NCBI GenBank assembly: GCA_965644495.1
Contig: CBFFSA010000076.1
Coordinates: 1 to 26,028, forward strand
Direction of reading: 5' to 3'
DNA: 26,028 nucleotides
Source of the DNA: Perkinsela sp. CCAP 1560/9
Taxonomy: Eukaryota > Protista > Euglenozoa: Kinetoplastea
A program made the position numbers and the translations under genes. Positions 1-26,028 of this stretch are shown piece after piece; position 1 is the stretch's first letter; the number at the start of each line of letters is the position of its first letter. The notes beneath the pieces are model-generated. The model did not search any database, was not told where the DNA came from, and saw only the letters and a program-made list of their open reading frames with translations.

Positions 1-1
1 G

Positions 2-1864
2 GAGAAACTTGGGCGATCTGTTCCAACCACCTGGGAAGAGTATGAAGAGATCTCTGCTCTTGCCCATGGTCATGACTGGAATGGAGATGGAGAGCCTGAT
101 TATGGGAGTTGTATTGCGCGTGCGCCTAAGTTCCAATCTCAGTTTTTCCTTTTCCAAGTAGTATCCAGCTTCTTGCAATCGAAGGGTAGTTCACAAGGAA
201 TCTATTTTGATGTTGATACCATGGATCCATTGGTCGATTCAGAAGGTTTTCGTGAAGGACTCGCCATGTACATGCGTTTACGTGAGCATGGACCACCTGT
301 AGAGAATACTGATATCGATATCTACCACCTGATGGTAGAGGGTCGATGTGCATTCGCTCCTACATGGGCTGATATTGGTCCTCTCTCACGAGATTCGCGT
401 GGCCTTCCCACTTCCACCTGGGACAAGATTGGAGCAGCAATTGGTCCAGGTGTACATCGTGTGTGGGATTACCAACAAAACAAGTGGCATGTTTGTTCAG
501 AAGAACCCTCTGAGTGTCCATTTGCTGGTGATGATTATGTGAATCATGCTCCATTTGCTGCGAATGGTGGATGGAGTGGTGCAATCCCAGAAAACATACC
601 AGATGATCGGAAGAATGCTGCATTTGCCTTCCTCGCTTTCTTGGGTGCCAACTCAGATGTGGATGTAATGGCTGGTACAGGGTTCGATCCATACCGTACT
701 TCACATCTTGACCTCGACCTCTGGCTTGCCAATGGTTTCAATGAGCGTGCAGCTGAGGCCCAAATTGCTGGATTAAGTGAAACATTGCGCTCCAGTAACT
801 TGGTGATGGATTTGCGGATCCAAGGTGCCAATGATTATGTGAATGTGGTGTTGGATGATGAGTTATTCCGACTCAACAAAGATGAGATCACACAAGATGA
901 GTTTGTCTCTCGAATTTACTCAGCTTGGCAGGGAATTACTGACAAACTTGGGCGCCGTGAGCTCCTTCAACAATACCGTGCCACCATAGGGTTACCACCC
1001 AAGGATTTTGCAGAGGAGGTTGAAGTGACTGAGGCAGGTCGCATTGCATTGGCTGTTGTTTCAGGACTCTTTGCTCTCTGTTGTATTTGCCTCTGCATTT
1101 TTGTATATTTGTACCGAGACCTCAAGGTGTGGCGCTTTGCTTCGCCAAACTTCTTGTTTGGCTCTTTAATTGGAGCTATCCTTGCATATGTTGGTATCAT
1201 CCTGATGTCAGCTGATGCTAGCACTGGGACTTGCACATCTGCATTGTGGTTGTATGTGGTGGGTATGAGTCTCATTTTGGGTAATATTTTTGCCAAGACC
1301 TATCGTACGTGGCGCCTTGACCAGAGTCATTTCTTCCTTATGAAGATAAGTGACCTCCACATTTTGCCTATTAGTCTTGTGGTGATGTCTCTGGCTATTG
1401 TCGTCCTTATTGTGTGGACTGTAATGGATGCTCCTACTGTGCACAGGAGCACTAAGGGAGTAGGTGACCTTGAGTATGTGATGATTTGTGACTCAACTGA
1501 TCATGGTCTTGAATTCTTTGTGACAACAGTTGCCTACTTTGGTTTTCTCCTTCTCGTTGCCCTCTTCCTCTCGTTCAACACTCGTAATGTTGGTGCTGCT
1601 GTCAATGAATCGAAAGTGCTTACTTTATGTGTGTACAACCTGACACAAGTACTCATCATTGTTATTGTATGTGCATTGGCTCTTGACTCCCCAGATGCTC
1701 GGTACATCCTGGTTGTCATCTGTTTGATATTTGGAGTCACAGTGACCATTGGATTATTGTTCATTCCCAAGGTTTGGATCACAATCCAGGGAAAAGGAGA
1801 TGAAGTGTCTGTGGTTCGTACAAACGATTTTCTGTCCAGTACGGATGCTGATCTTGACCAATAA
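2..1864 (+). CDS. Solute-binding-domain / class C GPCR fusion, copy 1 (5' end outside window)
   Basis: Frame open from position 2 (EKLGRSVPTTWEEY...) to TAA at 1862-1864. The solute-binding part has PTTWEEY and DWNGDGEPDYGSC. Seven hydrophobic segments follow with class C 7TM motifs FASPNFL, GNIFAKTYR, NESK and LFIPKV. Confidence 0.9.
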   Translation, partial: EKLGRSVPTTWEEYEEISALAHGHDWNGDGEPDYGSCIARAPKFQSQFFLFQVVSSFLQSKGSSQGIYFDVDTMDPLVDSEGFREGLAMYMRLREHGPPVENTDIDIYHLMVEGRCAFAPTWADIGPLSRDSRGLPTSTWDKIGAAIGPGVHRVWDYQQNKWHVCSEEPSECPFAGDDYVNHAPFAANGGWSGAIPENIPDDRKNAAFAFLAFLGANSDVDVMAGTGFDPYRTSHLDLDLWLANGFNERAAEAQIAGLSETLRSSNLVMDLRIQGANDYVNVVLDDELFRLNKDEITQDEFVSRIYSAWQGITDKLGRRELLQQYRATIGLPPKDFAEEVEVTEAGRIALAVVSGLFALCCICLCIFVYLYRDLKVWRFASPNFLFGSLIGAILAYVGIILMSADASTGTCTSALWLYVVGMSLILGNIFAKTYRTWRLDQSHFFLMKISDLHILPISLVVMSLAIVVLIVWTVMDAPTVHRSTKGVGDLEYVMICDSTDHGLEFFVTTVAYFGFLLLVALFLSFNTRNVGAAVNESKVLTLCVYNLTQVLIIVIVCALALDSPDARYILVVICLIFGVTVTIGLLFIPKVWITIQGKGDEVSVVRTNDFLSSTDADLDQ

Positions 1865-2189
1865 GAAATCTATTCTTATTATTATTATTTTGAATCAGTG
1901 TGATGATGATTTCCATACAAAAATTATAATTTAAACTCTTTTCACTTTTCAATTCCATTCAAATAACAATAAAGAATTTGAATGTAAACTCTCTCTCTTT
2001 TTCAATTTTTTTATTTGAATATTTCTTGTCTTTGTTTTCCAAGATCAGATCAACACTGAAGTCACAATATTCTCTCCATTATTGTACTCCATTCAAACAA
2101 TAATGTGAAGGTATGTTTGGATCAATGTGCTGATGGAGACTGTTTCTTGTGAAATAATCAACCAGAACTGAAATTCCAAGATGGAGAAC
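1865..2189 (+). repeat. Conserved 3' flank of the duplicated GPCR unit (copy 1)
   Basis: Near-identical to 14301-14618 and 22383-22683. Confidence 0.9.
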
Positions 2190-2499
2190 CACTACTGAAT
2201 CAAAATCAGACAGAAGAAACACGAGCCAACCCCGATCCACTTTGGGTTAATCTTCATTGCAGGGTAGTATTCTGTTGCCTGCTATTGACTTTTCCAGAAA
2301 CAAAAAGTCTGAAAAGGTCAAGAAAGACTTTCTGCAACGCGGAGTTTTTTCGACGCGCGGAAAAGGAACGATTTTTGGCTCAGGGTTGTTCTTTTCTCTG
2401 GAAACCACAGGCCTGAACATTTCTAGGAGAGGTTGGAAGCGCTTTAGATCCACGGGGTGGACTGAAGTTGTGGAAAACTTATCCTAAAAAGTAAGGAGG

Positions 2500-3572
2500 A
2501 TGGAAAGAGAAAAAAAAAACCCTTCCCCCCCCCCAAACAAACGAAGAAAGCTTTTGGAAGAACTCCCTAACGAAAAGGTCCTCTGCCCAAAACCTGGCAA
2601 CACAAGAGGCCAAGGACCGAGCGACGAACCACAATGCGACCTTCCGGCGACCTCAAAGGAATCGATCTCACCAAATGTCTCCGACAACACGAACCCCCCC
2701 CCCCCAAGAACGAAGAGAAAAAAAAGAACAAGAAATCGAGGTTTTGCATGGATAGAATTCCATTGACCTTAACCAAGAACCAGATGCTTACCTGTGGGTC
2801 AGGAAAAAGGATAGATAAAAACACTTTTTTGGACGCAAACTGTGGGGGAAAGTCTTGCAGGGCACACTTTTTCAAGAAGTTCTTTTCGGAGGACGAAATG
2901 CTTCGTTTGAAAGATCGACTTCTTCAGTGCCCAAAACAATACTGGGAAAGAAAAACGGATAAGAGGGGGACAAGAAGATTTCTTTATTCTGGCCACTGGA
3001 AGCATCGGTTTTACAACCTGGCCTTTGGGGCTGGAAAGGCTGGAAAATTGGAGCTCGAAAACCCGTTTTTGAAAAACATTTTGGTCGAGTTGGGGAAGAA
3101 GGTCTCTCGTGAAGCTTTGTCTCTGAAGAGGCCTGACGTTTATCTTCCCATTCGAGAAGCTGGCTTCGAAGAACAAGACTTTGGGATGTTCCATTTGTTT
3201 ATGTGTCCTGCTGGTCGATCTTTTATGCATACAGATGATAACGATTTTGTTTCTTGTATCTTCTCCATCAGTCTTGGGTCTGGAGATGGGGACGGGCTTC
3301 ATATGGGGGGATGCGGAGTGGACTTCAATTTGCGAGTGGGAGATCTTGTGATTGCAGACACCGATATTTTTTTTCATGGTTCTCCAAGCTACCAAGGAAA
3401 TGAACACCCCAAAATTATTTCGGAAAATGACAGACTGGTGGGTCTCTTTATTCTCCATCGAAAGTTTATGATCATGAAGGGGGTTCCAGCTGATGATTTG
3501 GAGAGAGAACCCTATGAATTTCGAACCATTCCAAACCAAAACCAGAAAAAGAAGAAGGAAGTTGATATTTAA
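2500..3572 (+). CDS. TET/JBP-like 2-oxoglutarate/Fe(II) dioxygenase
   Basis: ORF 2634-3572 has HxD (MHTDDND; H 3228-3230, D 3234-3236), GDLVI..FFHG (distal H 3375-3377), R in NDRLVGLFILH (3432-3434) and an upstream DKRG..LYSGHW motif. The likely real start is ATG 2500 (MEREKKNPSPPPNKRRK, NLS-like), joined by a 1-nt indel in the C12 run at 2694-2705; the alternative ATG is 2634. Confidence 0.75.
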
Positions 3573-5329
3573 TAATTAAATTGTTTATTTTTTTTGTCGT
3601 TAGCACCCAGTTGAGTCCTCTCTACGAAAATTTTTCCCCCTTTCTCCACTCTTTTTTCTGAAAAACCAGTTTGATCTTTTGTAAATATTATTCTTTTGCC
3701 AAAGGGTGTTCAGAATAAAAGGAGGAGGAGGGGAGAGGAGGGTGTAGACACAATAATAAAAATAGATTGCTCACAAAGGAAATTTGAGAAAACTTTTTGA
3801 TTTATCAACCTTTTGTTCAGCCCAACTTGGTTCTTTTTTTAGGAAGTGGTTTCTTGGTTTGTTTTTTTCTTTTGTTGCTCTGAGGGAAAGGCAAAAGTTC
3901 ATTATCATAACAACAACAGGGTTCCATTTCATCTGAAGGATTCTCCCAAAAACTATGAGCATACAGGTAATAAAAAAGATGACGTCGAAAACCTTCACAA
4001 TCGTCCAAGGTAAAATCCAATCCAAAGTTATAGATCAGACAAAATCCAACAAAACAAACCATGACTCCACACTCTGTCATGTTCTTGGGGGGGGGGGTGA
4101 GGTGAGGTGGTGATCAAAGGGGGTTGTGTCAGAAAATATTAAAAACCAAAAAGATTAAACAACAAAAAAAAGGCAAGTTTTTTAACCTGACCCTGCTGTG
4201 GGGTTGTTGGTGAGCCATGAATAAATTCTGGGGGTTGTTCTTCTGGGTATTTCCTCTTAAAATCATTTAACAACAATACCTAAAAGATGAGAAGGGTAAA
4301 AAAAAAAAAACTTAAGCTGAAAAGAAAGAAACAAAAAAATGAAAGAGAAAAGAACTGAAAGGTTCTTCGAATAAAAGGAATTTTTGTGATAGAGACTGTC
4401 ATAACAATCAAGAACGACCCTTCTTTTCTGTTCACAAATATACCCTACAAGAAGGATCCAATGATTCTGGCTCACAAGACAAGGCAGGTAAAACGTTTTA
4501 TAATCCCAGATAACCACTTTCTATAAATTCAAAACAATTATTGGCAAGAAGATAGATATGGGGGAAAATTGAAAAACAAAAGAAAATAAGAAAAACTTAC
4601 TTCCAAATAAGTTTGAGTTTGTTTTTGATACTGTTGTGTGTCATCTAACATAAAGGTGGGAAGTTCAACCAGTTCATCCTTCAGAGCATTTCCCTTTAGG
4701 AGAACTTGAAAGTAGAGACTGACTATCTGATAAAAAAAAGAAAAAGATAATCAGCAAAAGAGGGGGAGGGCTTGAGTGAAAAGGAAATTCAATAAAAGAA
4801 ATATTTTCCTTTTGAACCTGTTCACTCAGTGGACTTGTTAAAATACTCTTAAAATCACTCGGGGAAATGGGGTATCCACCGCTGAGGGTGGATACCCCAA
4901 AATAGAACTGTGTCTGCATTCCATAAGATTCCAAGTTTCTTTTTGGAATTTCAAGTTGTTTTTCAGTTGGAATAAATCTTTTCCAACGCTGTAGCTCGTG
5001 ATCTTTAAAAATTAAAGTTTCAACTAATTGCTTGATACGCATTAACTCCTTCCTTCCTTTCTTTTCTAATGTAGTATTATGTGGATCAGCCTTGAAACAA
5101 AGAAGAAAATAAAGTCAATTTTAAGAGAAAAACAAAAGTATGATGAACCAAACCAAACCCCCATTTCTTGAAAAACATCCTCTTTTGATGCCTCTAATCG
5201 AGATATCATCCCTTCATTATGAGTATGGCAAGAGGCACTCGGATATATTGAAATCTTGGAAGGGTATCCTTTTCCTTCCTTTTGATTCTCCCATTTTGCT
5301 GTCTCTGCATGTGTACTGGGTACAAAAGA

Positions 5330-6210
5330 GGGAGAGAATGAGGAGGAGGAGGAGGAGGATGAGAGAGAAGGAGAAAGAGAGAGAGAAGATGAATGAGAAG
5401 AAAAAGAAGAATGAGAAGAACGAAAATTTGAAGGAGAATGAGAAATAGAAGGAAAAGAAGGAAAAGAAGGAGAAGGGGACAATGAGGGAGCTGAAGGAAA
5501 CAGAGAAGGAGGAGAAGAAAATGGAGAAGAAGAGAGAGAAGAAGAGAAAGAAGGAGAACAAAGAGAACTGAGAGGGGAAGAAAAAGAAAGAGAAGGGGAC
5601 AATGAGGGAGAAGGGGACAATGAGGGAGAAGGAGAAGGAGAAAATGGAGAAGGAGAAGAAGAAAATGGCGAAGAAGGAGAAGGAGAAAATGGAGAAGGAG
5701 GAGGAGGAGAAGACAGAGAAGAAGGAGGAGAAGAAGAGAAAGAAGGCAATAGGGGAGATGAGGAAAACAGAGAAGGAGAAGAAGAAGAAGGAAAACTTGC
5801 AAAAGGAGAAAGAACTGGCGAGTGTGAAAAACAGGGACTTGGAGAGAAAGAAGGAGGATGAGAATGAACTGGGAAAGGAATAAAAGAAGATGGAAAATTA
5901 CTCATTTTTGGGGTTGATGATGGGGGAAAAGGAGTTGTGGAAGATTGGGAAAGAGAAAAGGGAGGGGAAGAAATGTGGATTGGAGGGGATGTGGTTTGGA
6001 AAGAAGGAGATGGAGAAGGAAAAGAAGAATGTGAACTTCCTGAGAGATGAGTGGAAGGAGAGAAATTACTTTGGGATGGTAGTGGAAAGGAAGAATGGGA
6101 AAAAGGAAATTGAGAGTTTTTTCCTGGTGATTGAGAAAGAGAAGAAAGGGAAGGGGAAGGGGAAGGGGAAGGGGAAGGGGAAGGGGAAGGGGAAGGGGAA
6201 GGGGAAGAGA
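5330..6210. repeat. Purine-rich low-complexity tract encoding the Ser/Pro/Phe linker on the - strand
   Basis: GAGAAG/GGAGAA-type degenerate repeats inside the 1290-nt exon 6448-5159. Confidence 0.85.
6148..6207. repeat. (GGGAAG)n microsatellite, about 10 units, encoding (SP)n
   Basis: Directly visible hexamer repeat. Confidence 0.95.
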
Positions 6211-9200
6211 GGTTAATTGGAGTGGTTTGGGAAGACATGTAGTGTGATGAAGGGTTGAGAGAGCGGGTGTTGTGACGATGAGAAGAGGATTGATAATTTG
6301 TTATTGGATCCAAAGTATCCTGAAGGGGCTGGCTACACAAAGAAGCATACTGATAAGCTGATTTGCAGGCAACAGAATTAGGTAGTTTTGTTCTTTTGAG
6401 GAGGGGTTGCTTTGAAGAACCAGAGGGAACAAGTTTTGAGGAGTGACCCTGAGTTTGGTAGAAGGAAAGAATTATTAGAAACCTGCTTTTGAGTTTTCAT
6501 ATTTTATTTTAAAAAAAAAACAATTTGAAATTTTCAGAAAACAACAAATTTGGGGGAAAAAAGGGTCAACAAAAAATACCTCACGAATAAGTCGAGAAGG
6601 TTCATTTGCACTTATTTTGCTTGCTCTATTTTCAAGTTTTTTCTCTGATCTCAATGCCTCACTTCGCTCCATCATCCCTTTGATCAAGGCATTCATTTGG
6701 ATTGAAAAAGTTCCTTTCTCTTGACTGCTCACTCCTTGCCTACGTCTACCTCCAAATGGCTTTTGGGCCCAACAATGAGAACGAGCTGCAAGAATGGCTC
6801 CTTCAATTGCAAATCCTGCTCTTCGTGGAAGAGGGTATCTGTGTTGTGTATGTCAGAGGGGAGTGACTTTATTCTGTGTTGCAGAAAAACTGAAAATCAA
6901 AAAAGAAGGATGGATATTATGAACCATCATTTTTAAAATTTTTCAACACCACAAAAATAATAAAGAAAAAACAAACCTCAATAACTCCCAATGAAGGTGA
7001 TCATGGAGGGTATGTAAATAAGGAGCCCAATAAAGAGGGGAGAAATTACATTCGTTATATTTTCTTCCCCAAAAAAAGTTGATATGGGGCTGAAGCCATT
7101 TGGAGAATGTCATAAGTCAACGTTAGAAACTCATATTCTGGTTCAAATGTGTCTCGTTCTGAATCTCCAATTAAAACATCGATGATCGATAAATCAAAAT
7201 CTGAATAACAAAAATCATGAAAAAACTTTTGAAATTTTTTTTTCTGAATAAAATTATTTGATCAAAAAAAGAGAGTTTTTGTTTGTTTGGAAAAAACAAG
7301 AAATAGTAAAGCAACCTTTTGCATTCAACAAAGCTGCATTAAACGTCGAAAAAGGAAGGACTTCTGGTTCCTCTTGTTCATGTGAAATGCTTTTGACTTT
7401 TTCACTTTGGAGATTTGAATCCATCCATTCAGCTAATTTAATAAGATATTCATCATAAAGAAAATCAACAGCTCCTTTTCGGGCTAAAATAAATGATTTT
7501 TTTTGAAAACAAAAATATATTGTCAGTTGCAAGAAAAATAAAGAGAGAGAATGTAATAATTAAGATATTCAAAAAAAAAAAAGTATTTCAAAAAATATTA
7601 TTCTTTTTTTATTATTCATAAAATTTTAAAAATAAAGAAGATATCAAAGAAAGAAGAGAAGAATAAACCAACCAGTTTTATTGGGGAAACCCCTTAAAAT
7701 CTTGATCCATTGAACGTAACTGGGTCTTACTTTTTTGATTCTCTCCCAAAGGTTGAATACCTTTTGTGATGGATCTGGAATTTTCACTCCTCCAATGAGA
7801 TAAAAAGCAATTCGAATCGTTAAATCATGAGGTGAATCTATTTTCTTTTTCAATGAGAATCTTATTCTTTTCAAAATATTATTTTCAAAATATTCTTTTT
7901 TTAACTTACACGGAGAAACATCCATCACAAAAAGTTTAACAACATTTCTACAAGTCCCTTCAACAAAGTGGATCAAGTCCAAGTTGTGGTCCCATGGTTG
8001 CGATGGAGTTATTGGAGGATTTCTCATTCCCATTTGATTCATAAATTTTGCAAGACTGTTCTTGGATCCCTCCCAGCCCTGAACCAATTGAAAATCGCTT
8101 TTTTTTTGTTCTAAAGTCCACCATGTATGTTTTTGATCCAAGTTACCAACAAGATTAATTGCCAGTTCATCATCAGCCTCAGCAAAACTTTCAAAGATAC
8201 TATAACCACCAAATTGATTATCCCAAAAGTGATGCTGACAAAAAAATATGGGCGGGGGGTGGATGTTAGTAAAAACAAAATTATTTTTTAGTTGAAATTA
8301 TTTTTTTTTTCTTAATTATTTTTGAAATTTTTCTTCTTTTATTTTCTTACTCATTTTTATGGAGTAAATTATTTGAATAAAATTTGGAAGAAGCTGCAAA
8401 CCTTTGTATGATCATCCCAAAGCCTTCCATCATCCTTATCTCGAACAATGTTACAACGCCAACAAGGCCTTTTTGATGTGTGATGAAACATTGATTTGCC
8501 ACCATGACCAAAAAGAAGTGAAGAGCATAACATGTCATGTGTTTCAGTGAATGAAATTGTTCGTTCCTTGAAATCTGAACACTGAATCTTTTTCTAATAA
8601 AAATCACAAAAGAGCCCCAAGAGAAGAAAGAGAGAGGAGAGAGGGGAAAGAAAAAGTAGGTAAAAAAGAGAGGAAAATTAATGAAATGAATATCAAACGA
8701 AAAATTAAATTAATTTTTTTTTTAAAAAAAATTAAAAAAGTCAAAAATTAAATTAAATTAAATTAATATTAATATTAAATTAAATTAAAAGCATTACAAA
8801 AAAATACTTACCTGGTAAATCATCTGATAAATCGGAGATATCTCTTCTTGAAAGGTTTTAAAGCTCTCTTTCATTACAAAGACACCCAAACTTAAATTGA
8901 GGACTGCTCTCCAAGTTCGAGTTCCTTTTGCCCACCACTCTTCATCACCACGTATCAATTTCACAACAACTCCTTTGTTCCTTCGATCAAAAGAACCCCC
9001 ATCAGCAGAAAAGATCATCTTCAGCTTTAAATTTTCCTCTGCATTAGCAACACCACCAATAGTCGCTTCTTCTTGGTGATTCATGTTGTTGTTCACCCGA
9101 TCATATTCATCCCAAAGAGGATACTTGTTGCCCTCCCAATCATCATCAAACATTCTATTCACTTCACCCTCAACATCATTCACTCTCCAACCATGGTCTG

Positions 9201-9746
9201 TTTTTTCCAAGGGAATCTGATCTTTTAGTTTTTGGAACCAATACTTGAACTGACAATCTGAAAATTCCCAACCCAGTTCAGAATTAAGACCTCGAATCTG
9301 ATACCTAGTGAGACCCAATCTTAGAAACAATCTTCCAAAAAACTCTGCCTTTTCCTGTTTTTTCATACACCGATATTTTTTTGATACTTCTTGCGCATCA
9401 TTTGGGAGTCCAAAAAAGTTTCTAATCTGTTGTTTCTGAGAAAAACCACTCCTCCCCCTCCTTGCATTTCCATCATCCAACTGAAAGAGTTTCTCTAAGA
9501 CTTCAATAATCTGAGAAGTGTTGCAATCACTTAAAAGCTGAGCCAAGAAAGAGGTTGGATTTTCAAAACCAAGTGATCTCACAGCTTCATTCACCCAGTT
9601 GGTTCGGAGGAATTTCTCATCTGAGGAACTACGGTGATGGCAAGAAGCAGTCACAGGAGGAGTAAAAGTGGTGGTGGTGGTGGTGGTAAAGGTACTGTTG
9701 GAAGCAGCAATGGGGAGTGTGGTGGTGGTGGTGGTGGTGGTGGAAA

Positions 9747-9772
9747 AAGAAGAGGTGGTACCACCTCTTCTT
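9747..9772. repeat. Perfect 26-bp palindrome
   Basis: aagaagaggtggt|accacctcttctt, no spacer. Confidence 0.95.
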
Positions 9773-10560
9773 CTAGTCTAAAAAACAGAAATTATTTTTC
9801 TTACAGTGTCATCACTTAACTTGACTTGAAGAATAAAAAGACTCTTCTCTTTGCAAAAAAAAAAGACCTGTTCCTGTTGTCCTTGTTGTGGAAAAACTTG
9901 AGGAATCGCTCCCATACCCATCATACTCTCAGCAGTTTGATCAACAGCAGCAGCAGCTCTTTCTAATTCCAAACACCAAATTCTTTCAGAATAGCAACAC
10001 TTTCAAACCCACCAAAAAGAAAAAAGACAAACAGAAACTTTAAACCCACCCAGCTACTCTCTGAAACTGAAGAGCGAAGAAGAGGAAAAGAATTCAAACC
10101 TTGTTCTTTTTGACACCTCTTACATTCATCTGGACAATAATGGCGTAAACGTTGATGAATACTTTTGGCTTGTTTTGAACTGAAAACTCCACACGAACTT
10201 TTCTCATTCCAAATGACTACACACCAACTGTTTCTTTGCAGAGACTCCTCTTTCAGCCATTTGAACACAACACAACACAACACACAACCCTGTCTTTTCC
10301 TCCTTTCTTCTTCTTCAGTGGGTCACGAAACAAAGCAGCTGCTTTTTTTTTGGTCTTTTCTCAAGAGAAAAAAAAAAAAAAAAGGCGGTGCCTCAGATAA
10401 AAAAAATAATTTATTTTTCACTATTTGTTGAGAGCCTCCTCTTTCACAACAACAACTGGGGCAACTGCTGGGAGTTTCCAGTTTTCAGCCATCCCCCTTG
10501 CTGGCCTTCCATCTTGGTTTCGAAGAAAATAGCCAGAAGAAATCGACAACAATTTTTTTT

Positions 10561-10585
10561 CCTGTGAAAATTTGATTTTCACAGG
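10561..10585. repeat. Hairpin with 11-bp stem and 3-nt loop
   Basis: cctgtgaaaat-ttg-attttcacagg. Confidence 0.9.
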
Positions 10586-10889
10586 GCCGGTCACTGTTGC
10601 GGTGGACCCATCCCGAAAAATTTTCTAGTAGGCAATGACCCCCAACTTCTTTCGGATTTGTGAAGGGAGATCAAGTTGTCCCCAAAATTCTTTCTTCCCG
10701 GTTTTTCGATTTGTTTTGGTTTTGGTAACATTATCATCGACCAAAAAGAAAAAGAGGGCCTCAGGGAAATGTTGAATGAAAACCCGGCGAGAGCACCAAT
10801 GTTTTCGACCTTTTCCCCTCCACTAAAAGAATTTTGTGTGTGAGTGAAAAGAATCTTTAGAAAAAAAAAAAACTCATGAGAGTGTTTTT

Positions 10890-11412
10890 TACCAATTTTT
10901 CGAGGATCTTTGGGATTCTTTGCGCCATAACACAATGAACCATTTGTTCATTCATCATCGATCTCATCATCTCGTCTTGTTCGTTTCCACCAGGTCCTGC
11001 TATTTTTTTCGCTTTTTTTTTCTATTCGAAGCGTTTTGCTCTTTCCGAATCAAACGGAGACATTCTTCAGTCTGCACACGTCTTACTTGGGCGCTAGCAA
11101 GAAGAGAAGTGTGTGGGTGAATAATAATCGAGTGAACGGCGGTTAGCGGTCCACATGTGAAAATGCGGGACACGCTGAACACATCATCGCTCTTTGTCTT
11201 TATTTGTAATCAAGAAGAACGACCGGATCGGCTTTGCAGATGATCCGACGTCAAAGGAGAGAAAGAGGGAGAGAGAGATTGGAAGAGAATCAAAGGTCGA
11301 CTTTGGGAAATGATCAAATACACATGAGAGCAACCCAGGTATCAGAAGAGTAACGCTTGTTGCCTCTGTGCAAGTCTCCCAAGTATCTTCGATCGTCAGT
11401 TTGTTTTCCATT
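10890..11412 (-). other. Possible fragmentary spliced gene divergent from GPCR copy 2 (unidentified)
   Basis: ATG ORF MENKLTIEDTW..., and an exon-like segment ..VHSIIIHPHTSLLASAQ followed by a gtaaga donor (weak WD40-like look). No full model could be built. Confidence 0.25.
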
Positions 11413-11957
11413 TCGAGAAGTTGAAAAAGAACACCTCCTCCTCTCCCACGCCATCTTGATCCCACCCAAAAATTTTGAGTGAAAAAGAACCTAATTATCA
11501 TCCTTTTTGGCAATTGGGTTCATATCGCCTTTCCGCGTTTTTTTGGGGTCTTTTTTCCTATCCACTTTGCCACATCACTTCCACAGTCGTGTTTCAGAGC
11601 CAAAAAATGCGGGTTGACCTCTGGCTGTGTTCTCTCCCAAGAAATTTTTTTGTCCCAAAGTGGAGAGACGCAATTCTTGAGGTGAGAGAAGAGAAACTTT
11701 TGGGTACCCAGGAGATTATTGAGTTCTCATTACTCAACTTATACTCCTATGGGTTGACAGGGGATTATTCCCCTTGGGTTTCCGTTGAAAATGGGACCTA
11801 CCCGCTCAAAGTTTGCCACCTCCCCCAACGTTTTAGCGCCCCAAATTTAGCATTGATAGAATCGGTGAATCGATTCACTGCTGACGTGGCAATTGATCCT
11901 TTTTTTGGGGGCTTTTTGTTTCCGCTTCAAAATTTTGTGTTTCTTTTCTCTTCTCTG

Positions 11958-14300
11958 ATGTCTCGACAATTTTCTCCTTTCTTCGTATTGTTGTGCCTTC
12001 TGGTGGCAATAATACACTCACCAACAACCAATGCACAACGCCCCCATGAAGGGGTGCACATCACATTTGTTGTTGAGGATCGTGTGAGTGCCAATCTTTT
12101 TCGCCATCAAGAAGCTTTCCAAGACGCCAGCGGTGCCACCGTGGATATTATCGAATTTCCTTTTGATGACCTCTTTGGCCAAATCATGGGTGATCTGCGT
12201 GATGACAGTCCACTCTATGATGGATTTGTGTTCCCACCAAACCAAATGGTGGACTTTATCAAATGCCCCGATTGTTCGTTGGAGGTGCTCACCGAGCGTG
12301 TCCGCAACAACGAGGAACTGGCTTGGCATGATATCTCTCCGTATTTTCGTTCACATAACTCAGTATTTGATGGTCAAGTGTACACAGTGACATTGGATGG
12401 TGATGTTCACTACCTCTACTACAATCTCGACGTCCTGGAGAAACTTGGGCGATCTGTTCCAACCACCTGGGAAGAGTATGAAGAGATCTCTGCTCTTGCC
12501 CATGGTCGTGACTGGAATGGAGATGGAGAGCCTGATTATGGGAGTTGTATTGCGCGTGCGCCTAAGTTCCAATCTCAGTTTTTCCTTTTCCAAGTAGTAT
12601 CCAGCTTCTTACAATCGAAGGGTAGTTCACAAGGAATCTATTTTGATGTTGATACCATGGATCCATTGGTCGATTCAGAAGGTTTTCGTGAAGGACTCGC
12701 CATGTACATGCGTTTACGTGAGCATGGACCACCTGTAGAGAATACTGATATCGATATCTACCACCTGATGGTAGAGGGCCGATGTGTGTTCGCTCCTACA
12801 TGGGCCGATATTGGTCCTCTCTCACGAGATTCACGTGGCCTTCCCACTTCCACCTGGGACAAGATTGGAGCAGCAATTGGTCCAGGTGTACATCGTGTGT
12901 GGGATTACCAACAAAACAAGTGGCATGTTTGTTCAGAAGAACCCTCTGAGTGTCCATTTGCTGGTGATGATTATGTGAATCATGCTCCATTTGCTGCAAA
13001 TGGTGGATGGAGTGGTGCAATCCCAGAAAACATACCAGATGATCGGAAGAATGCTGCATTTGCCTTCCTCGCTTTCTTGGGTGCCAACTCAGATGTGGAT
13101 GTAATGGCTGGTACAGGGTTTGATCCATACCGTACTTCACATCTTGACCTCGACCTCTGGCTTGCCAGTGGTTTCAATGAGCGTGCAGCTGAGGCCCAAA
13201 TTGCTGGATTAAGTGAAACATTGCGCTCCAGTAACTTGGTGGTGGATTTGCGGATCCAAGGTGCCAATGATTATGTGAATGTGGTGTTGGATGATGAGTT
13301 GTTCCGACTCAACAAAGATGAGATCACACAAGATGAGTTTGTCTCTCGAATTTACTCAGCTTGGCAGGGAATTACTGACGAACTTGGGCGCCGTGAGCTC
13401 CTTCAACAATACCGTGCCACCATAGGGTTACCACCCAAGAATTTTGCAGAGGAGGTTGAAGTGACTGAGGCAGGTCGCATTGCATTGGCTGTTGTTTCAG
13501 GACTCTTTGCTCTCTGTTGTATTTGCCTCTGCATTTTTGTATATTTGTACCGAGACCTCAAGGTGTGGCGCTTTGCTTCGCCAAACTTCTTGTTTGGCTC
13601 TTTAATTGGAGCTATCCTTGCATATGTTGGTATCATCCTGATGTCAGCTGATGCTAGCACTGGGACTTGCACATCTGCATTGTGGTTGTATGTGGTGGGT
13701 ATGAGTCTCATTTTGGGTAATATTTTTGCCAAGACCTATCGTACGTGGCGCCTTGACCAGAATCATTTCTTCCTTATCAGGATAAGTGACCTCCACATTT
13801 TGCCTATTAGTCTTGTGGTGATGTCTCTGGCTATTGTCATCCTCATTGTGTGGACTGTAATGGATGCTCCTACTGTGCACAGGAGCACTAAGGGAGTAGG
13901 TGACCTTGAGTATGTGATGATTTGTGACTCAACTGATCATGGTCTTGAATTCTTTGTGACAACAGTTGCCTACTTTGGTTTTCTCCTTCTCGTTGCCCTC
14001 TTCCTCTCATTCAACACTCGTAATGTTGGTGCTGCTGTCAATGAATCGAAAGTGCTTACTTTATGTGTGTACAACCTGACACAAGTACTCATCATTGTTA
14101 TTGTATGTGCATTGGCTCTCGACTCCCCAGATGCTCGGTACATCCTGGTTGTCATCTGTTTGATATTTGGAGTCACAGTGACCATTGGATTATTGTTCAT
14201 TCCCAAGGTTTGGATCACAATCCAGGGAAAAGGAGATGAAGTGTCTGTGGTTCGTACAATCGATTTTCTGCCCAGTACGGATGCTGATCTTGACCAATAA
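11958..14300 (+). CDS. Solute-binding-domain / class C GPCR fusion, copy 2 (780 aa)
   Basis: ATG 11958 starts a signal peptide MSRQFSPFFVLLCLLVAIIHSPTTNA. Solute-binding motifs FQDASGATVDIIEFPF, LDGDVHYLYYNLDVL and PTTWEEY; class C 7TM. The upstream part of the 941-aa track ORF has no counterpart in copies 3 and 4. Confidence 0.92.
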   Translation: MSRQFSPFFVLLCLLVAIIHSPTTNAQRPHEGVHITFVVEDRVSANLFRHQEAFQDASGATVDIIEFPFDDLFGQIMGDLRDDSPLYDGFVFPPNQMVDFIKCPDCSLEVLTERVRNNEELAWHDISPYFRSHNSVFDGQVYTVTLDGDVHYLYYNLDVLEKLGRSVPTTWEEYEEISALAHGRDWNGDGEPDYGSCIARAPKFQSQFFLFQVVSSFLQSKGSSQGIYFDVDTMDPLVDSEGFREGLAMYMRLREHGPPVENTDIDIYHLMVEGRCVFAPTWADIGPLSRDSRGLPTSTWDKIGAAIGPGVHRVWDYQQNKWHVCSEEPSECPFAGDDYVNHAPFAANGGWSGAIPENIPDDRKNAAFAFLAFLGANSDVDVMAGTGFDPYRTSHLDLDLWLASGFNERAAEAQIAGLSETLRSSNLVVDLRIQGANDYVNVVLDDELFRLNKDEITQDEFVSRIYSAWQGITDELGRRELLQQYRATIGLPPKNFAEEVEVTEAGRIALAVVSGLFALCCICLCIFVYLYRDLKVWRFASPNFLFGSLIGAILAYVGIILMSADASTGTCTSALWLYVVGMSLILGNIFAKTYRTWRLDQNHFFLIRISDLHILPISLVVMSLAIVILIVWTVMDAPTVHRSTKGVGDLEYVMICDSTDHGLEFFVTTVAYFGFLLLVALFLSFNTRNVGAAVNESKVLTLCVYNLTQVLIIVIVCALALDSPDARYILVVICLIFGVTVTIGLLFIPKVWITIQGKGDEVSVVRTIDFLPSTDADLDQ

Positions 14301-14618
14301 GAAATCTATTCTTATTATTATTATTTTGAATCAGTGTGATGATGATTTCCATACAAAAATTATAATTTAAACTCTTTTCAATTCCATTCAAATAAAAATA
14401 AAGAATTTGAATGTAAACTCTCTCTCTTTTTCAATTTTTTTATTTGAATATTTCTTGTCTTTGTTTTCCAAGATCAGATCAACACTGAAGTCACAATATT
14501 CTCTCCATTATTGTACTCCATTCAAACAATAATGTGAAGGTATGTTTGGATCAATGTGCTGATGGAGACTGTTTCTTGTCAAATAATCAACCAGAACTGA
14601 AATTCCAAGATGGAGAAC
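14301..14618 (+). repeat. Conserved 3' flank of the GPCR unit (copy 2)
   Basis: Matches 1865-2189; similarity stops abruptly after atggagaac where the Gypsy-containing segment begins. Confidence 0.9.
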
Positions 14619-17600
14619 TGAACACGTCTACTTTGGTACAGACTAAAGAAGGTGTGTCAGAAATATGTTGAATGGACAACTGAAGAGCGGTCCTCAGAAG
14701 TCTCACGAAAAGTGAGAAACTTCCTGATGACATCATCAATGGTGTTCTTTATTTGGATTCACAGAAGGTCGACTTGGAGGAGACCAAGGGTCGACTTGAA
14801 GGAGATTGGGAATTGACTTGGAGGAGATCAAGAGTCGGATCAAACAAATAGAGCAGAGAGCCAAGTGTCTTCAGAGTAGCGCACATTGCTCGTGTGCACT
14901 CTCCCCGCCCGAGAAGTCCTTCGTTTAGGAGAAACGGAGGTGCTCGAAGAAGAGCTCGAGGAGCTTGAAGAGCTTGAGGACTTGGAAGAGGAAGAAGACC
15001 TCTTGGTCGATTTAGAGGTTGAAGATTTGGAGGTTTTCGATGATTTAGAGGAAGAGGAAGAGGAAGAAGACTTCTTGGGTGACTTGGAAGTCGATGATTT
15101 GGAGGATGATGACTTAGAAGAAGATGATTTAGAAGGAGGTGGATTCAGAGGGTGTTTCTGATGATATCTTTCGATTTGTTCTGAAGCATCAATTTGTGAA
15201 ACATGGATCCATTCAGCATTGGCCTTTCAGTAGTGTTTGAAATGCACTCGATAATAAAGTTCTCCATTTGAATACTTATGCTTAAGGATTTCCTTCACTT
15301 CAAAATCATAACCATCATCATCTTCAACAATCTCTTCGGGTGCTGGCTCTGAATTAACAATAGATATTTCATTTGATTCAGGATGCAGAGTAATCTCGTA
15401 CCGAACATGGAGTTTCTTTAAGTTCTGAACGTTTTGGATTTCTGAATTCTTCTCTCGTTTGAGTTCTTGAATCCGGTAACTTCCATTCTTAAGATCCTCC
15501 ACAACCACATAAATCTCTTGGTAATAATAGGGTCTGTACTTCTTCGCAATCTCTTTTCCTTTTGATTTGTTTCTCTTCAACACTTGATCACCAACCTTCA
15601 ACACAGTGTATGTTCCTTCATTTGCTTTGTCATATCGTTGTTTTTGTTTCACAGCCACTTTCTCTCTCTCCTCTCGAACCCAATTAATCACGCCCTCCCT
15701 CTCAGTTTGTAGCTTCTTGACGTAGTCATCGATCAGTACCACTGGTTTGTTCACAGAGCCGAAGAGAGAATCGATTGGCATAATTGGATGTCTCCCAAAG
15801 TGAAGATAGAAAGGTGTGTAACCAGTCGAGGAGGAACGAGAAGTATTGAAAGCAAATTCCACAAGAGGTAAGAGAAGGTCCCAATCGTCTGCATATTTAT
15901 CAACAAATGAGCGAATGATTGATTCCGTAACTTTGTGGGAACATTCAACACGACCGTTACTTTCGGAGTTGTAGGGGGCAATAAAGGTTTGTTTCATTCC
16001 GAGAAGCAGGGTCAGTTCTGCAAAAATTTGATTTGCAAATTCTGAACCATTATCCGTTACTATCCGCAAAGGCATTGAATTAACACAAACATACTGAAGT
16101 AAGGCTTCAGCAGAGGCTTCGGCAGAGGGATCTGGAATTGCATACAGACGTATATAGCCACTAAAGTTATCAAGGATAGCCAAAATAAAAGAATTCCCGC
16201 GAGCAGTGACTTTTGGTTCCTTTGTGCAATCCAGGTGGAGTAAAATTCCAGGATAAGAAGCCATATAAGGGTTTAAATCAGATGTCAATGTCTTTGTTTT
16301 TGAGTTGATCGCACAATTAAGGCAACGGTGATAGTAACCTTTGATCGCAGCACTCATACCAGGGAAATAATAGGAGACGGCAATTGCATCATAAAGTCGC
16401 TCGAACTTGCGGTGTCCGGAGATTAGATCTGAATGATAAGCGTCAAATACTGTATTCCACAAACTCTGGGGCAGAATTGCAGGTGGGAGACAACCAGCAG
16501 CTGTAGTTTCATCCACTTTCCTCAAGATTCCGGATTCATCAACCCAGTACTTGTGAGCAGTTCGTTGGAGTGCCCGAAGATAGCGCTTCCTCTTAGGCAA
16601 GAGGCCATTAATCAAGTAATTAATAATCATTGAGCAAAACTTATCTTTCCTTTGAGCTTGAGCAAGGTAAGGAAGTTCAACTAAAACCTGATCAATGTCA
16701 TCCGTATCCACTTCAACATTTTCAGAACTTTCTTTTGCTGCGGAAAGTGGCAGAGGCAGTGATCGAATAGGAGGAATGTCACGAATTTCCGGCTCACTGA
16801 TTAATTCAATTGTTTCCAAAATGTCGTTTTGTCTCGAGAGGATATGGGCTTTTCCTGAAGAAGATTGTCCCAAATCCACCAACTCTTCAAACCAACAAGT
16901 CACATAATCCTTTGAAGTGGCCTTATCATGATATCCAACATACTGGCGGCTTAGAGCATCAGGGATTGCCATCAACTTTCCAGGTTTGTGAATGACCTTT
17001 GGGTGATATTCTAGAATTCGAGCAACCCAATCGCGCAGCATATCATGGTTCGGTACTTTCTGTTGACCCGTTTTAAACACAGATTTGAGAGATTCGCAAT
17101 CACAGAACACAATAGGATTTCGACCACGGACGTAATACTTGAAGTTGTTTAATGCCCACAGGATTCCAAGGCCCTCCCGCAGAGGATTAGTGTACTTCTG
17201 CTGTGTCTCTGTGAGTGTTCGAGAAGCATACTCAATAACTCGGTGGTGGCCATCTTGATCCATCTGAGTGAGAATCGCTCCAAGACCAAGCTTGCTGGTG
17301 TCAACATGGATAAAAAATTCTTTTGAGAAGTCAGGATGGGCCATACAGGTTTCGGATGTCAAGAGCTCCTTTAAGAGATGTATCTCCTTGATGGATTCTT
17401 GGGATAGCGAAAACTTCTTTGGATCCATCACTTTGGCTTTTCTCAGGTGTGTTGTTAAACTGGATGAACGAGGGATGAACCGTTTTAACCAAGTAACCAT
17501 TCCCAAAAATCTCTCAACTTCCTTTGGAGTAGTCGGAAGTGGGTAATTCTGGATTGCCTCAACTTTTTTCGGATTTGGCTTCAAACCATCCTTCGTCGCA

Positions 17601-19678
17601 ATAAATCCAAGAATTTCAAAATTCGGCTTGCAAAACGAGCACTTTGCTGGTTGGAGCATCAAATCATTGTCCCTCAATCTTTGGAAAATTTTCGTCAGAT
17701 CAGCCAGATGTTGTTCAAACGTTGAGCTGTAACAAAGGATATCATCGATGTAGGCAAAACAACATTGCCAAACCAGACCGCTCAGGACCGTTTCAATAAA
17801 CCGTTGTTGTGTTGCTGGAGCGTTACATAACCCAAAAGGCGTCGAGAGAAATTCCCAGAGACCATATTTGCTGGTAAAAGCAGCCTTTTCAATGTCTCCT
17901 TCTCTGATTGGGATCGACCAGAAAGTCTCAGACAGGTCAATAGAGGAAAAATAAGAAGAACTGCCAAGTGCAGCTAAGATTTCATCCATACGGGGTAGTG
18001 GATAGGAGTCCTTCTTTGTTTTTTCATTCAGGCGACGGAAATCCACACAAAACCGAACATTTCCATTCTTCTTGTCCACCAAGAGAATTGGAGCAGCCCA
18101 AGGAGAGTTAGATTTTCTAATCACTTTCCTTTTCACCATCTTGTCAATATGTTTCCATATGATGCAGTCTTCGACAGGTGTGGTTCTACGGGGTTTTGCT
18201 CTCAAGGGTGGACCCTCTGCCTCGATTGGATGACTCGTTGCCGTGGTCCTAGTAATTGGACCTTCTCGCTTCTCATCATCCCACAAGTCTTGGAAAGAAA
18301 CCAACATCTCCGCTAATTGTATTTTCTGCCTGTCATTCAATTCAGCATTATCCAAACCAAATTTCTCATATGCTTCTTTGAATTTATCAGGCGGATCTTT
18401 TTTATGTACAGTAGACTTGTTTTGGGTGGTGATGTGAGTAAGCAATTGTATCACAGATGAGTCACAATCGAGGTCAGGGTCGGGGTGTCTGGTGGATCGA
18501 TCAGATTTGCCATTCTGATGATCGTGCAACTTCCGTCTCTTCTGTTTAGGTTTTTGAAATAAATCCTCATCCTCAATCATTTTCTCAAGCCATGGTCCAG
18601 CGAGTGCACAGAGATAATTGGCACCAGTCTTAGCATTAACTGATTTTGTGCGAGGTGGTTGTTTCTTGGGTACAGATTTTCGAAGACAGGGTTCAATCAA
18701 AGAGTGTTTCAAGAGTTGAAGAAGCTCGGTGTTTTTGACATCATGGTCATTAAGCTGATAAACCGTTCCAACTTCGAGATTTTTCTTCACTTGGACCTCA
18801 GTCTCAGAATGATTCATCACAAGAACATTCAGTGTGTTGCGTTTTTTACCTTGCTCGATTGTAACCAAGCCAGGAAGGAATAACAAACTCTCTGATCCAA
18901 TTGATGGGAAGAAGAATCCTTCAGGTGACAATGCACGGCCGTTCAGTGTTAGTGGAAGGAACACTGATGATCTCAGAGGGATGGCCTTTGTCTCAGCCGA
19001 GAGTACCAAGGTCTTATCTCGCCTCTCTACGTCGACGTAGAAATCTGGATCTGTGACCTGAGGAAGGGTGATGTTGAGCTGTGCCGAATTTGCCTGGATG
19101 CATCTCCGACCTTTCCACGTTAAATGACCATCTCTGAGGCCTAGGCGACATTGTTTTGTGTTTGAACAGGAAGGTCATCAATAATGAAGAACCAGAGTCC
19201 TTGGGAAAACCTCTTTCCGACTTGACCACGGTGTGAATCTCTTCATTAATCGCAACTTCGGTTGAGTTTCCCACTTTGACTTGAAGCTCGTCAGCTTGCC
19301 ATCAGTTCAGGATCTCAAATCCAGGACGCGAAAGTTGCTGACGACTGATCGCATTGATACCAGATCCCGTGTCTATACAAGTAGTAGTTGCTAATCCACC
19401 TGCCTGAGACACAACTTCAAATGCACAACCAATATCCCGGCTTTCCGCATTGATTACTAAATTCAGAAGAACATTGATCACATGATCTGAAGGAAGGTTG
19501 GTATGGGATGATGGATCAGCCCGAACGTGAACATCAGAGTGTTTCAGAGGTTCTTGAACGTGAGTGTTGGACTGACTCAGAGGTTCTTTGAATTCAGTTG
19601 AGCAACTAGATGAAATCGAAGAATACAATACAATGGGCTCAGAGCAGTAGAAAAACCCAATGGGAAAACTGGTGTTCA
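14619..19678 (-). mobile_element. Degenerate Ty3/Gypsy retrotransposon 1 with chromodomain (no gag or clear LTRs)
   Basis: PR-RT-RH-IN-chromo order. Left edge set by loss of flank similarity; right edge tentative (TGAACAC...GTGTTCA 7-bp inverted ends). Confidence 0.85.
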
Positions 19679-19679
19679 A
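14840..19679 (-). pseudogene. pol: pol polyprotein (protease, RT, RNase H, integrase, chromodomain, Ser/Lys-rich tail)
   Basis: Protease CIDTGS; RT SPWAAPILLV, CVDFRRLN, PFGLCNAP, YIDD; RNase H HVDTS/PDALSR; integrase H..GH..CLNC, LHLD, VTDNGSEF, NGRVE; chromodomain FEVKEILKHK..YRVHFKHY*KANAEWI. In-frame TGA at 19302-19304 and 15227-15229, and frameshifts in the protease region (~19160-19220). The frame continues past 15227 to a stop at 14840. Confidence 0.92.
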
Positions 19680-23407: not shown

Positions 23408-25080
23408 TTAACCATCCCTTATTCGAACCGACGGGCGCAGAGTTCGACCCGTTCTCGACGTCGGCAATTCCCCAGGTTTAGGTTGAGATTTCTTAGATGA
23501 ATCTTTCTCAGGTACTGACTTAGCAACATTCTCTTTTGCCTTCCGCTTCAACGGTTGTTTCTCTTTCCCTTTTTGCTTTGGCGGTTGTTTCTCTTTCCAA
23601 TAATCTTGAATTATATGGTGAGCGTCGAAGTCAGATGCTTTTACCCACGATTCTTCTTCTTCTCCTTTCCATTTAACCAAATATTCCCGATTTGATGTAT
23701 CGCCTCGATGGTCCAGGATTTTCTTTACAACTTCAGCCTCTTCTTTGCCCGTAATTTCCGCATGAGTGGCCAACTTCAAACGATTTCGGGGGACTTCTCC
23801 ATCCAGAAGTGCTCCTCTGTTGTCAATTAAGTAATAGCCCTTCTTTTCTTTATCGAATCCGACAACTTTGTAAGGACCTTCCCAACTTGTTGTTCCTTCT
23901 TGGAATTCCGTTTATCAACTTCTTTCATTACTAGCGCACCCACAGGAAGAATTTTCTCTTTCTTTCCGCGATTCTTGAAATTAGAATACTTCTCCCCCGA
24001 CGCCACAGATAGTTTAAAAATAGCAGGATAAATAGCTTCTACCATCTTCCGATTTCGCTGCAGTAACTCGTCCTCTTTTGGAACTTCACCCACAGTCTTT
24101 GTATAATCTTGAAATTCATTCAACTTCCGAGCAAACATAAGAGCAAATGGTGATGATTTGTGACGGCCGACAATTCGGTCATTCAGAGACATTTGGATCA
24201 CAGGAAGCATCTTTTCCCAATTCGCAAATTCGCCTTGAAGGAATTTGTTCGTGACCATCTTTACCTCACCCACAAATCTTTCAGCTACGCCATTCTTTGA
24301 AGGAGAATACTTCGAAATTGCTCTCGGAAGAAATTCAGCAGCTTCACGAAAATCAGAAATCAACCCGCTCATAAAGGATGGGTCTTGGTCATATTGGATC
24401 ATCTTTGTAACTCCAAAGTTAGCGAAGACATTTAATAAAACCCAAGCCACCTCTTTTGACGATTTAGTCCTCAGAGGTCTCAAAATGATGAACTGAGTCG
24501 CTACATCCACAATAATCAGCACGTACTTATAACCTTCAGCTGTCTCTGAGAGTAAGCCGATAAAATCAAAAGCAATGTGATCAAAAGGTAAGAGTGCCAG
24601 AACTGCAGAAATTGGGTGAAATCCACTCCTTCCCACATTGTATAAAAGACACTCTCGACAACCTCGAGCGATCTTCACGCACAATTTTTTCATACCTCTC
24701 CAGTAATGACCTCTTCGAAAGGCAAGGATGCATAACCCTATTGGACCGATATGACTTTCCGTGTGGATCTTCTTGATGACTTCTTCTTTCTGATCATCCG
24801 GAGGTTCAGATTTCCCCGTTAGTTCGACAATCATCCCTTGGACTTGATTCCAAAGACCTTCTTGAATTGCATCATCAATCTCTAAGTCTGAAAGTCCTCC
24901 AACCATACTTCCATCTTCAGGTAGCGTGATCAACCGAGAAAGCACGTCCGGAAGAACATGCTCAATTCCCTTCTTATATTCGACCGTAAAATCGTACCCG
25001 AGAAAATAGTGGAACCAATCTCTTACCATATAACTTTCGCTCTTGTTCAAGTAAGTTAGCGCTTGGTGGTCTGTTTCCAC
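23408..25080 (-). pseudogene. pol: pol fragment: RNase H C-terminus, integrase, GPY module, chromodomain
   Basis: ETDHQAL..PDVLSR; H..SHIG..CREC; IAFDF, QYDQD, NGVAER. A frameshift at ~23885 restores WEGPYKVV and joins to the chromodomain ORF (KILDHR..EYLVKWKG..SWV). Confidence 0.9.
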
Positions 25081-25454: not shown

Positions 25455-26028
25455 ATGGACCGTCAAGATCCTTCTCTATTCCTCTTTTTATTGTGTCTTC
25501 TGGTGGCAATAATACACTCACCAACAACCAATGCACAACGCCCCCATGAAGGGGTGCACATCAACTTTGTTGTTGAGGATCGTGTGAGTGCCAATCTTTT
25601 TCGCCATCAAGAAGCTTTCCAAGACGCCAGCGGTGCCACCGTGGATATTATCGAATTTCCTTTTGATGACCTCTTTGGCCAAATCATGGGCGATCTGCGT
25701 GATGGCAGCCCACTCTATGATGGATTTGTGTTCCCACCAAACCAAATGGTGGACTTTATCAAATGCCCCAATTGTTCGTTGGAGGTGCTCACCGAGCGTG
25801 TCCGCAACAATGAGGAACTGGCTTGGCATGATATCTCTCCGTATTTTCGTTCACATAACTCAGTATTTGATGGTCAAGTGTACACAGTGACATTGGATGG
25901 TGATGTTCACTACCTCTACTACAATCTCGACGTCCTGGAGGAACTTGGGCGATCTGTTCCAACCACCTGGGAAGAGTATGAAGAGATCTCTGCTCTTGCC
26001 CATGGTCGTGACTGGAATGGAGATGGAG
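25455..26028 (+). CDS. Solute-binding-domain / class C GPCR fusion, copy 4 (runs off window end)
   Basis: ATG 25455; near-identical to the start of copy 3 and open to the window end. Missing from the ORF track because no stop is reached. Confidence 0.88.
   Translation, partial: MDRQDPSLFLFLLCLLVAIIHSPTTNAQRPHEGVHINFVVEDRVSANLFRHQEAFQDASGATVDIIEFPFDDLFGQIMGDLRDGSPLYDGFVFPPNQMVDFIKCPNCSLEVLTERVRNNEELAWHDISPYFRSHNSVFDGQVYTVTLDGDVHYLYYNLDVLEELGRSVPTTWEEYEEISALAHGRDWNGDG

Follow-up and report, generated by a model that had tools for sequence, protein, structure and literature searches.

A putative RAG1-like DNA transposon with a TET/JBP-family dioxygenase gene and a predicted C48 protease domain in DNA of a probable amoeba

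Overview

The window analyzed here is a stretch of 26,028 nucleotides (contig CBFFSA010000076.1 of assembly GCA_965644495.1, deposited as Perkinsela sp. CCAP 1560/9), which harbors a 9,425-bp DNA transposon with a TET/JBP-family dioxygenase gene and, convergent with it, a spliced transposase gene. With a probability of about 0.6, this is a cut-and-paste element of the CMCT clade residing in an amoeba, in which the TET enzyme and a C48 (Ulp1-type) protease domain tethered to the transposase oppose silencing by the host. In the mechanism proposed, the host would silence transposons via cytosine methylation, the TET enzyme would oxidise 5-methylcytosine (5mC) on the DNA of the element, so that it is expressed and spared deamination, and the tethered C48 domain would free the transposase, or chromatin proteins bound to the element, of SUMO or a different ubiquitin-like modifier. 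The wider proposal, that of an undescribed amoeba RAG1-like lineage countering two silencing layers (5mC and SUMO), with a TET clade traded among CMCT, Harbinger and pogo-like transposons, is tentative.

Extent and termini of the element

2238 to 11662, no strand: whole DNA transposon, 9,425 bp, CAC..GTG ends, located between two copies of a tandem G protein-coupled receptor (GPCR) gene
2238 to 2246, plus strand: left terminal inverted repeat CACTTTGGG, 9 bp, TET side, 400 bases before the TET gene
11654 to 11662, minus strand: right terminal inverted repeat, transposase 5' side; similarity to L038, L039 and L041 stops at CAC
11073 to 11372, no strand: solo long terminal repeat (LTR), 300 bp, TG..CA, 4-bp target duplication AGTC; a subterminal insertion missing from sister copy L038

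Three decayed relatives (L038, L039 and L041) align with the window as far as 11662, ending in CACTTTG, while their flanks are unrelated. All of them originate from assembly sample ERZ24900291, which also includes a contig identical to window positions 1–4033. As the 9-mer at 2238 inverts the right end where the relatives stop, the TET and transposase genes are placed inside one element of 9,425 bp; the chance of finding this 9-mer within the 500 nt preceding the TET open reading frame (ORF) is about 0.0015. The 5'-CA..TG-3' termini expected of the CMCT clade are present as CAC..GTG with the 9-bp inverted repeat. An earlier reading of the DNA made without database searches (the sequence-only reading) had bounded the element at 2450–10600; the ends of the sister copies and the inverted 9-mer move these limits to 2238–11662. 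Ends near 2450 and 10600, as well as a CACTA at 2190, were rejected since the sister copies extend to 11662. No further copies of the ends or flanks were found in assembly G000, and pattern scans of metagenome and viral contigs returned no relatives.

TET/JBP-family dioxygenase

2634 to 3572, plus strand: TET/JBP-family 2-oxoglutarate (2OG)-Fe(II) dioxygenase, 312 aa, intronless, catalytic residues intact
2500 to 2766, plus strand: basic, Pro-rich ORF that begins upstream of the TET gene and reaches into its start over a run of 12 C

The intronless HxD..H..R dioxygenase gene recognized by the sequence-only reading, convergent with the spliced gene, corresponds to the ORF at 2634–3572, with HTDDND at 3228, the His of FHGS at 3372 and the Arg of DRLVG at 3429. 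Eight relatives were retrieved from the databases, and the iron triad (H199, D201 and H248) and the 2OG-binding R267 are invariant among the nine homologs. The predicted structure (pLDDT 78) first matches CcTet, NgTET1, TET2 and CMD1. The Z-score was 17.4 for NgTET1 (rmsd 3.2 over 211 aligned residues), 17.3 for CcTet, 16.6 for TET2, 14.8 for an uncharacterised bacterial oxygenase and 14.7 for CMD1, whereas AlkB-type proteins scored 13.2 or less. Thus, the modelled fold favors Tet_JBP over other 2OG families and supports assignment of the enzyme to the TET/JBP family, closer to the TET/JBP fold than to AlkB or prolyl hydroxylases. Atlas searches likewise gave Tet_JBP clusters at 0.96. Pfam Tet_JBP (PF12851) scored no hit, which points to a divergent TET/JBP clade; the PDB sequence search was blank, and similarity to JBP2 (E-value, 6e-6) and JBP1 (E-value, 0.002), obtained in a small comparison set, is weak. 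The ORF starting at 2500 may provide the true N-terminus, the catalytic core being unaffected either way.

Transposase

10280 to 10046 and 9962 to 9868, minus strand: exons 1–2, Cys/His-rich N-terminal part; sister-copy amino acid matches of 77% and 45–49%
8812 to 9777, minus strand: exon 3, first catalytic Asp (SADG)
8593 to 8402, 8234 to 7910, 7837 to 7673 and 7483 to 7316, minus strand: exons 4–7, second Asp, CxxC, DLIH
6977 to 7200, minus strand: exon 8, H(3)H motif, with a frameshift near 7070; the exon of a relative is ~38 nt longer
6580 to 6838, minus strand: exon 9, catalytic Glu (IEGA); L040 match by position only, 25/300 shuffles

The transposase-protease gene is predicted to consist of 15 exons running from 10280 to 3817 on the minus strand (4,843 coding bases), with 14 introns, all of them GT-AG and AT-rich. 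The convergent spliced gene described earlier is therefore retained, but with 15 exons instead of 14 and with its frame broken in exon 8. Exons were searched singly, and joined exons were used just for a frame check by coordinates; the true start codon was not found. All of the DDE transposase motifs listed by the sequence-only reading (SADG, CxxC, DLIH, YLHxxxxH and E) were located on the minus strand: SADG at 9009, HDML..CWRC at 8539 and 8464, DLIH at 7979, YLHTLHDH at 7020 and IEGA at 6807. The gene thus exhibits the CMCT hallmark, a DDE transposase whose second D and E enclose C(2)C and H(3-4)H.

The search with exon 3 yielded close fragments and longer relatives. Three relatives with few introns, P0018, P0021 and P0023, match exons 3–6 in the same order and thereby bear out both the succession of the exons and the D, D, CxxC and H motifs; both halves of exon 8 match the L040 relative (0/300 shuffles each). 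Pfam and PDB sequence searches of the transposase exons were blank, with no sequence-level match to RAG1 or Transib. In the P0018 model, which is of low confidence (pLDDT 58), RAG1 and HzTransib chains occur throughout the listed Foldseek rows to rank 48; in VIA, the top five matches are RAG1/HzTransib and the top seven include BbRAGL, these matches being weak (E ~1e-3, Z 6–7) but consistent. Neither the exons nor their relatives gave a Pfam Plavaka or EnSpm hit, and the element ends in CACTT, whereas Plavaka, EnSpm and ESTA elements are marked by TGT, CATCA or CACTA termini and a duplication of TA or 2–3 bp. Based on the CAC..GTG ends and the RAG1/Transib-like folds of the relative, the element is placed in the CMCT clade as defined by Kojima 2025 (PMC12730594), without a named subfamily, and the modelling supports a RAG1/Transib-like transposase. 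The motifs and the fold matches of P0018 agree with the earlier preference for RAG1/Transib-CMC over Kyakuja-Dileera-Zisupton (KDZ). Plavaka itself belongs to CMCT and not to KDZ (PMC12730594).

Predicted C48 protease domain

5159 to 6448, minus strand: exon 10, Ser/Pro-rich linker of 430 codons, predicted to connect transposase and protease in frame
5090 to 4818, 4726 to 4601, 4520 to 4356, 4279 to 4187 and 4083 to 3817, minus strand: exons 11–15, C48 (Ulp1/CE-clan) protease with His, Asp, Gln and Cys

The open frame of the linker exon, together with an acceptor at 6449 that has a branch-like motif 30 nt upstream, suggests a fusion. The non-repetitive ends of exon 10 are stop-free in just 0.06% of shuffles, and an alternative acceptor at 6483 would terminate the transposase early. 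Predicted splicing thus supports a transposase that reads in frame through the linker into the C48 domain. The motifs NHW (4466), CYDS (4406), PQQ (4201) and ECG (4074) follow each other in C48 order, so that the His-Asp-Cys triad reported earlier is complete and correctly ordered, but the match per exon is weak: the His/Asp exon alone reached 18 bits on 48 residues against Pfam C48 (E-value, 0.003; cut-off 20.7). The same exon matched atlas PF02902 clusters at 0.94, and the C48 exons matched a C48 protein encoded on contig C1 (2/300 shuffles). Four DNA matches on other contigs proved to be low-complexity linker and are not TET copies.

The C48 family includes deneddylases and deubiquitinases too. 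A serious, though less favored, possibility is that the domain acts as such an enzyme, protects or processes the transposase, or represents a recently captured, decaying fragment, and is not an anti-silencing deSUMOylase. The Pfam score below threshold would fit this, as would the best solved-structure match of the His/Asp exon, the deubiquitinase/deneddylase ChlaDub2 (E-value, 0.3, weak), the WLND motif of the contig C1 protein, which is not evident in exons 11–12, and the absence of the C48 domain from every relative examined. On the other hand, all four catalytic positions are kept over five exons, and CACTA and Mutator elements repeatedly carry Ulp1 domains (PMC2528002). The kept frame, and introns as AT-rich as those of the transposase part, suggest a long residence under selection.

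State of the window copy

In exon 8, the upstream frame ends near 7057, at codon 764, and YLHTLHDH with its H(3)H lies in another frame; past the frameshift, this second frame remains open over 870 codons until the stop at 3817. No intron can bridge the break, since no GT-AG pair restores the frame without losing a conserved motif. The Y..W anchors are 43 nt apart in the window copy, while L040 has 27 codons between them, and L019 and P0010 have 30 each; with ~13 codons missing between them, the frameshift near 7070 is probably a real deletion of ~38 nt and not a homopolymer error. The predicted product of this copy would lack the catalytic Glu and the protease. Because the deletion precedes H(3)H, the catalytic Glu and the protease, the window copy is probably non-autonomous or defective, with its TET core intact.

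It is rather unlikely that the element is autonomous and the frameshift an assembly error. The break does fall on a homopolymer (a run of seven T), the remaining junctions are all clean, and, compared with L038, the window copy shows few C>T changes; however, ~13 missing codons are beyond what a one-base error explains.

Methylation footprint and proposed role

Comparison of L038 with the window revealed 192 C>T/G>A changes, 8 in the reverse direction and 21 transversions. The C>T/G>A rate is 0.54 at CG and 0.23–0.26 in other contexts, so that all contexts are affected. Between the GPCR copies, 9 of the 21 transitions fall at CpG, though CpG accounts for only ~1/9 of C and G positions. The excess of C>T/G>A in the dead copy and the CpG transitions between the GPCR copies point to cytosine methylation followed by deamination; the host therefore probably methylates transposons, and given such a footprint an anti-silencing role of the element is plausible. 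The limited decay of the window copy may simply reflect its youth and does not demonstrate TET protection.

Several observations weigh against an anti-silencing CMCT transposon. The window copy, the only one with two ends, has no target-site duplication of the 2–5 bp usual in the CMCT clade (the flanks end in GATC and begin with GAGA), so that of the shared ends and duplications proposed by the sequence-only reading, only the right end, common to three relatives, was recovered. L038, L039 and L041 do not extend as far as the protease and TET, being cut short by other insertions or by the ends of their contigs, and the distant relative L040 has neither. Consequently, no second copy with TET or protease was seen, and the co-occurrence of both genes at several loci was not borne out, although their membership in one transposon was, both lying inside its ends. 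The Cys exon had no relative in the database search, and a search of the partial assembly turned up no DNA methyltransferase gene. Finally, TET/JBP proteins act on thymine or N6-methyladenine (6mA) too.

It is conceivable, albeit unlikely, that the dioxygenase is transposon cargo with a different target, acting on thymine like JBP or on 6mA like CcTet, or forming an adduct of the CMD1 type; it would then mark or protect the element and leave 5mC in place. The best fold matches include CMD1 and CcTet, an enzyme acting on both 5mC and 6mA, the sequence resembles JBP2 and JBP1 weakly, and the clade is divergent enough to escape Pfam Tet_JBP; the same question is left open for the fungal enzymes in Kojima 2025 (PMC12730594). 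In contrast, the mutation footprint of the dead copy indicates methylated cytosine as the pressure, and no glucosyltransferase or other partner gene is present within the element.

TET genes as exchanged transposon cargo

108 to 1277 and 2156 to 6778 of L019 (G000 contig C71): TET paralog and RAG1-like transposase, all transposase motifs intact
1060 to 1683 of L034 and L033 7931 to L034 900 (G000 contig C63): pair formed by a broken RAG1-like transposase and an HxD..H ORF

The nearest TET relatives (45–59%) were found on other contigs in three settings: flanked by a DDE_Tnp_4 gene of Harbinger type on one side and a SWIM/SAP gene on the other; with a SWIM/SAP-like gene as the sole neighbour; and after a 1,037-residue ORF with pogo-like DDE motifs (a motif reading, no Pfam hit). 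In a ten-row tree, the window TET groups with the Harbinger-side proteins, away from the long-branched protein of contig C71, a 29–32% paralog that stands head-to-head with an intronless 1,540-residue RAG1-like ORF. As the closest relatives adjoin Harbinger and pogo-like transposases, the TET gene appears to be swapped cargo. Its passive capture by the window copy, with no benefit to the family, is improbable: no other TET copy was seen in the family, but members of this TET clade occur undamaged next to transposases of three unrelated types, and in every case the N-terminus is basic and of nucleus type and the catalytic residues are preserved.

The HxD..H ORF of contig C63, which faces the transposase ORF, is TET-like by motif only and unrelated in sequence to the window TET. 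Sister copy L038 is inserted into a copy of the flank of the C63 element. The RAG1-like transposase of C71 has a 37% relative, P0010, in a JGI metagenome. Four JGI contigs (L020, L026, L036 and L024) carry the same TET clade with Harbinger and SWIM/SAP or pogo-like transposase neighbours and are candidates for further TET-bearing protist transposons; their pogo-like transposase is fused to a nucleotidyltransferase-looking region. A distant TET relative at 10001–10606 of L028 has a helicase of the Herpes_ori_bp type and an integrase zinc finger as neighbours; its contig is labelled as an archaeal metagenome-assembled genome but has the appearance of a eukaryotic mobile element or virus that was binned wrongly. 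In L040, the relative without TET is followed downstream, at 13290–16800, by a convergent, apparently spliced gene with putative P-element/THAP9-like motifs.

Genomic setting and host

173 to 1864, 11958 to 14300, 20040 to 22382 and 25460 to 26028: class C GPCR copies, at least four, 97–98% alike, intronless
15227 to 19679 and 23408 to 25080: two Gypsy-type retrotransposon remnants, chromodomain integrases
14618 to 14897: LTR related to the solo LTR at 11073–11372
1352 to 4030 of L051 and 978 to 4121 of L052 (the long G000 contigs C1 and C5): JBP1 and JBP2, typical kinetoplastid genes

Intronless genes that combine solute-binding and 7tm_3 domains are arrayed in tandem along the window, with different mobile elements between the copies. 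The outer domain of these class C GPCRs is a bacterial-type solute-binding protein (PF13416 plus PF00003), and each copy is followed by a different mobile element. No second LTR matching 14618–14897 was seen.

The JBP1 and JBP2 genes suggest that a kinetoplastid (Perkinsela-like) endosymbiont is represented in the assembly. The window itself is not kinetoplastid DNA, since its genes carry many cis-spliced introns. An amoeba hosting a kinetoplastid endosymbiont is presumably Paramoeba/Neoparamoeba with Perkinsela, and we infer that the element resides in the nuclear genome of a Paramoeba-like amoeba.

Comparison with known systems

Zisupton carries a SUMO protease. ULP1 domains have also been described in plant CACTA and Mutator elements (PMC2528002), which share with the window element a C48/Ulp1 domain on a DNA transposon, including the CMC-clade CACTA; no TET has been reported in them, and the predicted C48 domain of the window element would form the terminal part of the RAG1-like transposase itself.

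In fungi, TET genes with the same proposed function are known from the CMCT-clade elements EnSpm, PlavakaB and the RAG1-like ESTA, and have been swapped among transposon superfamilies, a pattern seen in rust fungi (Kojima 2025, PMC12730594) and repeated by the TET relatives described above. The fungal elements and that of the window have in common a TET gene in a cut-and-paste element, the D..D..C(2)C..H(3-4)H..E signature and CA..TG ends, and ESTA shares a RAG1-like transposase as well. They differ in their hosts, fungal versus protist, and in the TET itself, which belongs here to a Pfam-invisible clade. The window transposase is further predicted to have the C48 domain, whereas Ulp1, SUMO or a protease is not mentioned for the fungal elements (PMC12730594).

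Transib, RAG1 and ProtoRAG share with the window element the motif order, the CAC ends and the fold of relative P0018. The window element differs from them in lacking a sequence-level match, a RAG2-like gene and a 5-bp duplication, and in its intron-rich, protease-tailed gene. Red-algal Plavaka elements, which carry a 2OG oxygenase gene and a methylase-SET gene (bioRxiv 10.1101/2025.02.11.637652), are likewise non-fungal CMCT elements with several chromatin-modifying accessory genes (PAG2/PAG3), one of them a putative 2OG oxygenase. However, PAG3 fuses ParB to an oxygenase that has not been placed in TET/JBP, PAG2 combines a methylase with SET, and C48 is absent.

In the literature searched, no amoebozoan TET-transposon was found, nor any element combining TET with C48. 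The novelty suggested by the sequence-only reading is thus narrowed, TET in CMCT elements being already known in fungi (PMC12730594), and persists for the union of TET with C48. New are the Paramoeba-like host lineage, which is inferred, the TET clade and the presence of both cargos in one element, each cargo being known separately. These features would extend TET-bearing transposons from fungi to a probable amoebozoan, as a parallel case of demethylase trading under methylation pressure. The divergent TET is small (~270-residue core), intronless and directly assayable, and a host with visibly C>T-decayed dead copies is one in which the transposon-TET anti-silencing claim can be examined. The RAG1-like transposase with a protease tail, if true, would constitute a new domain architecture for the CMCT clade.

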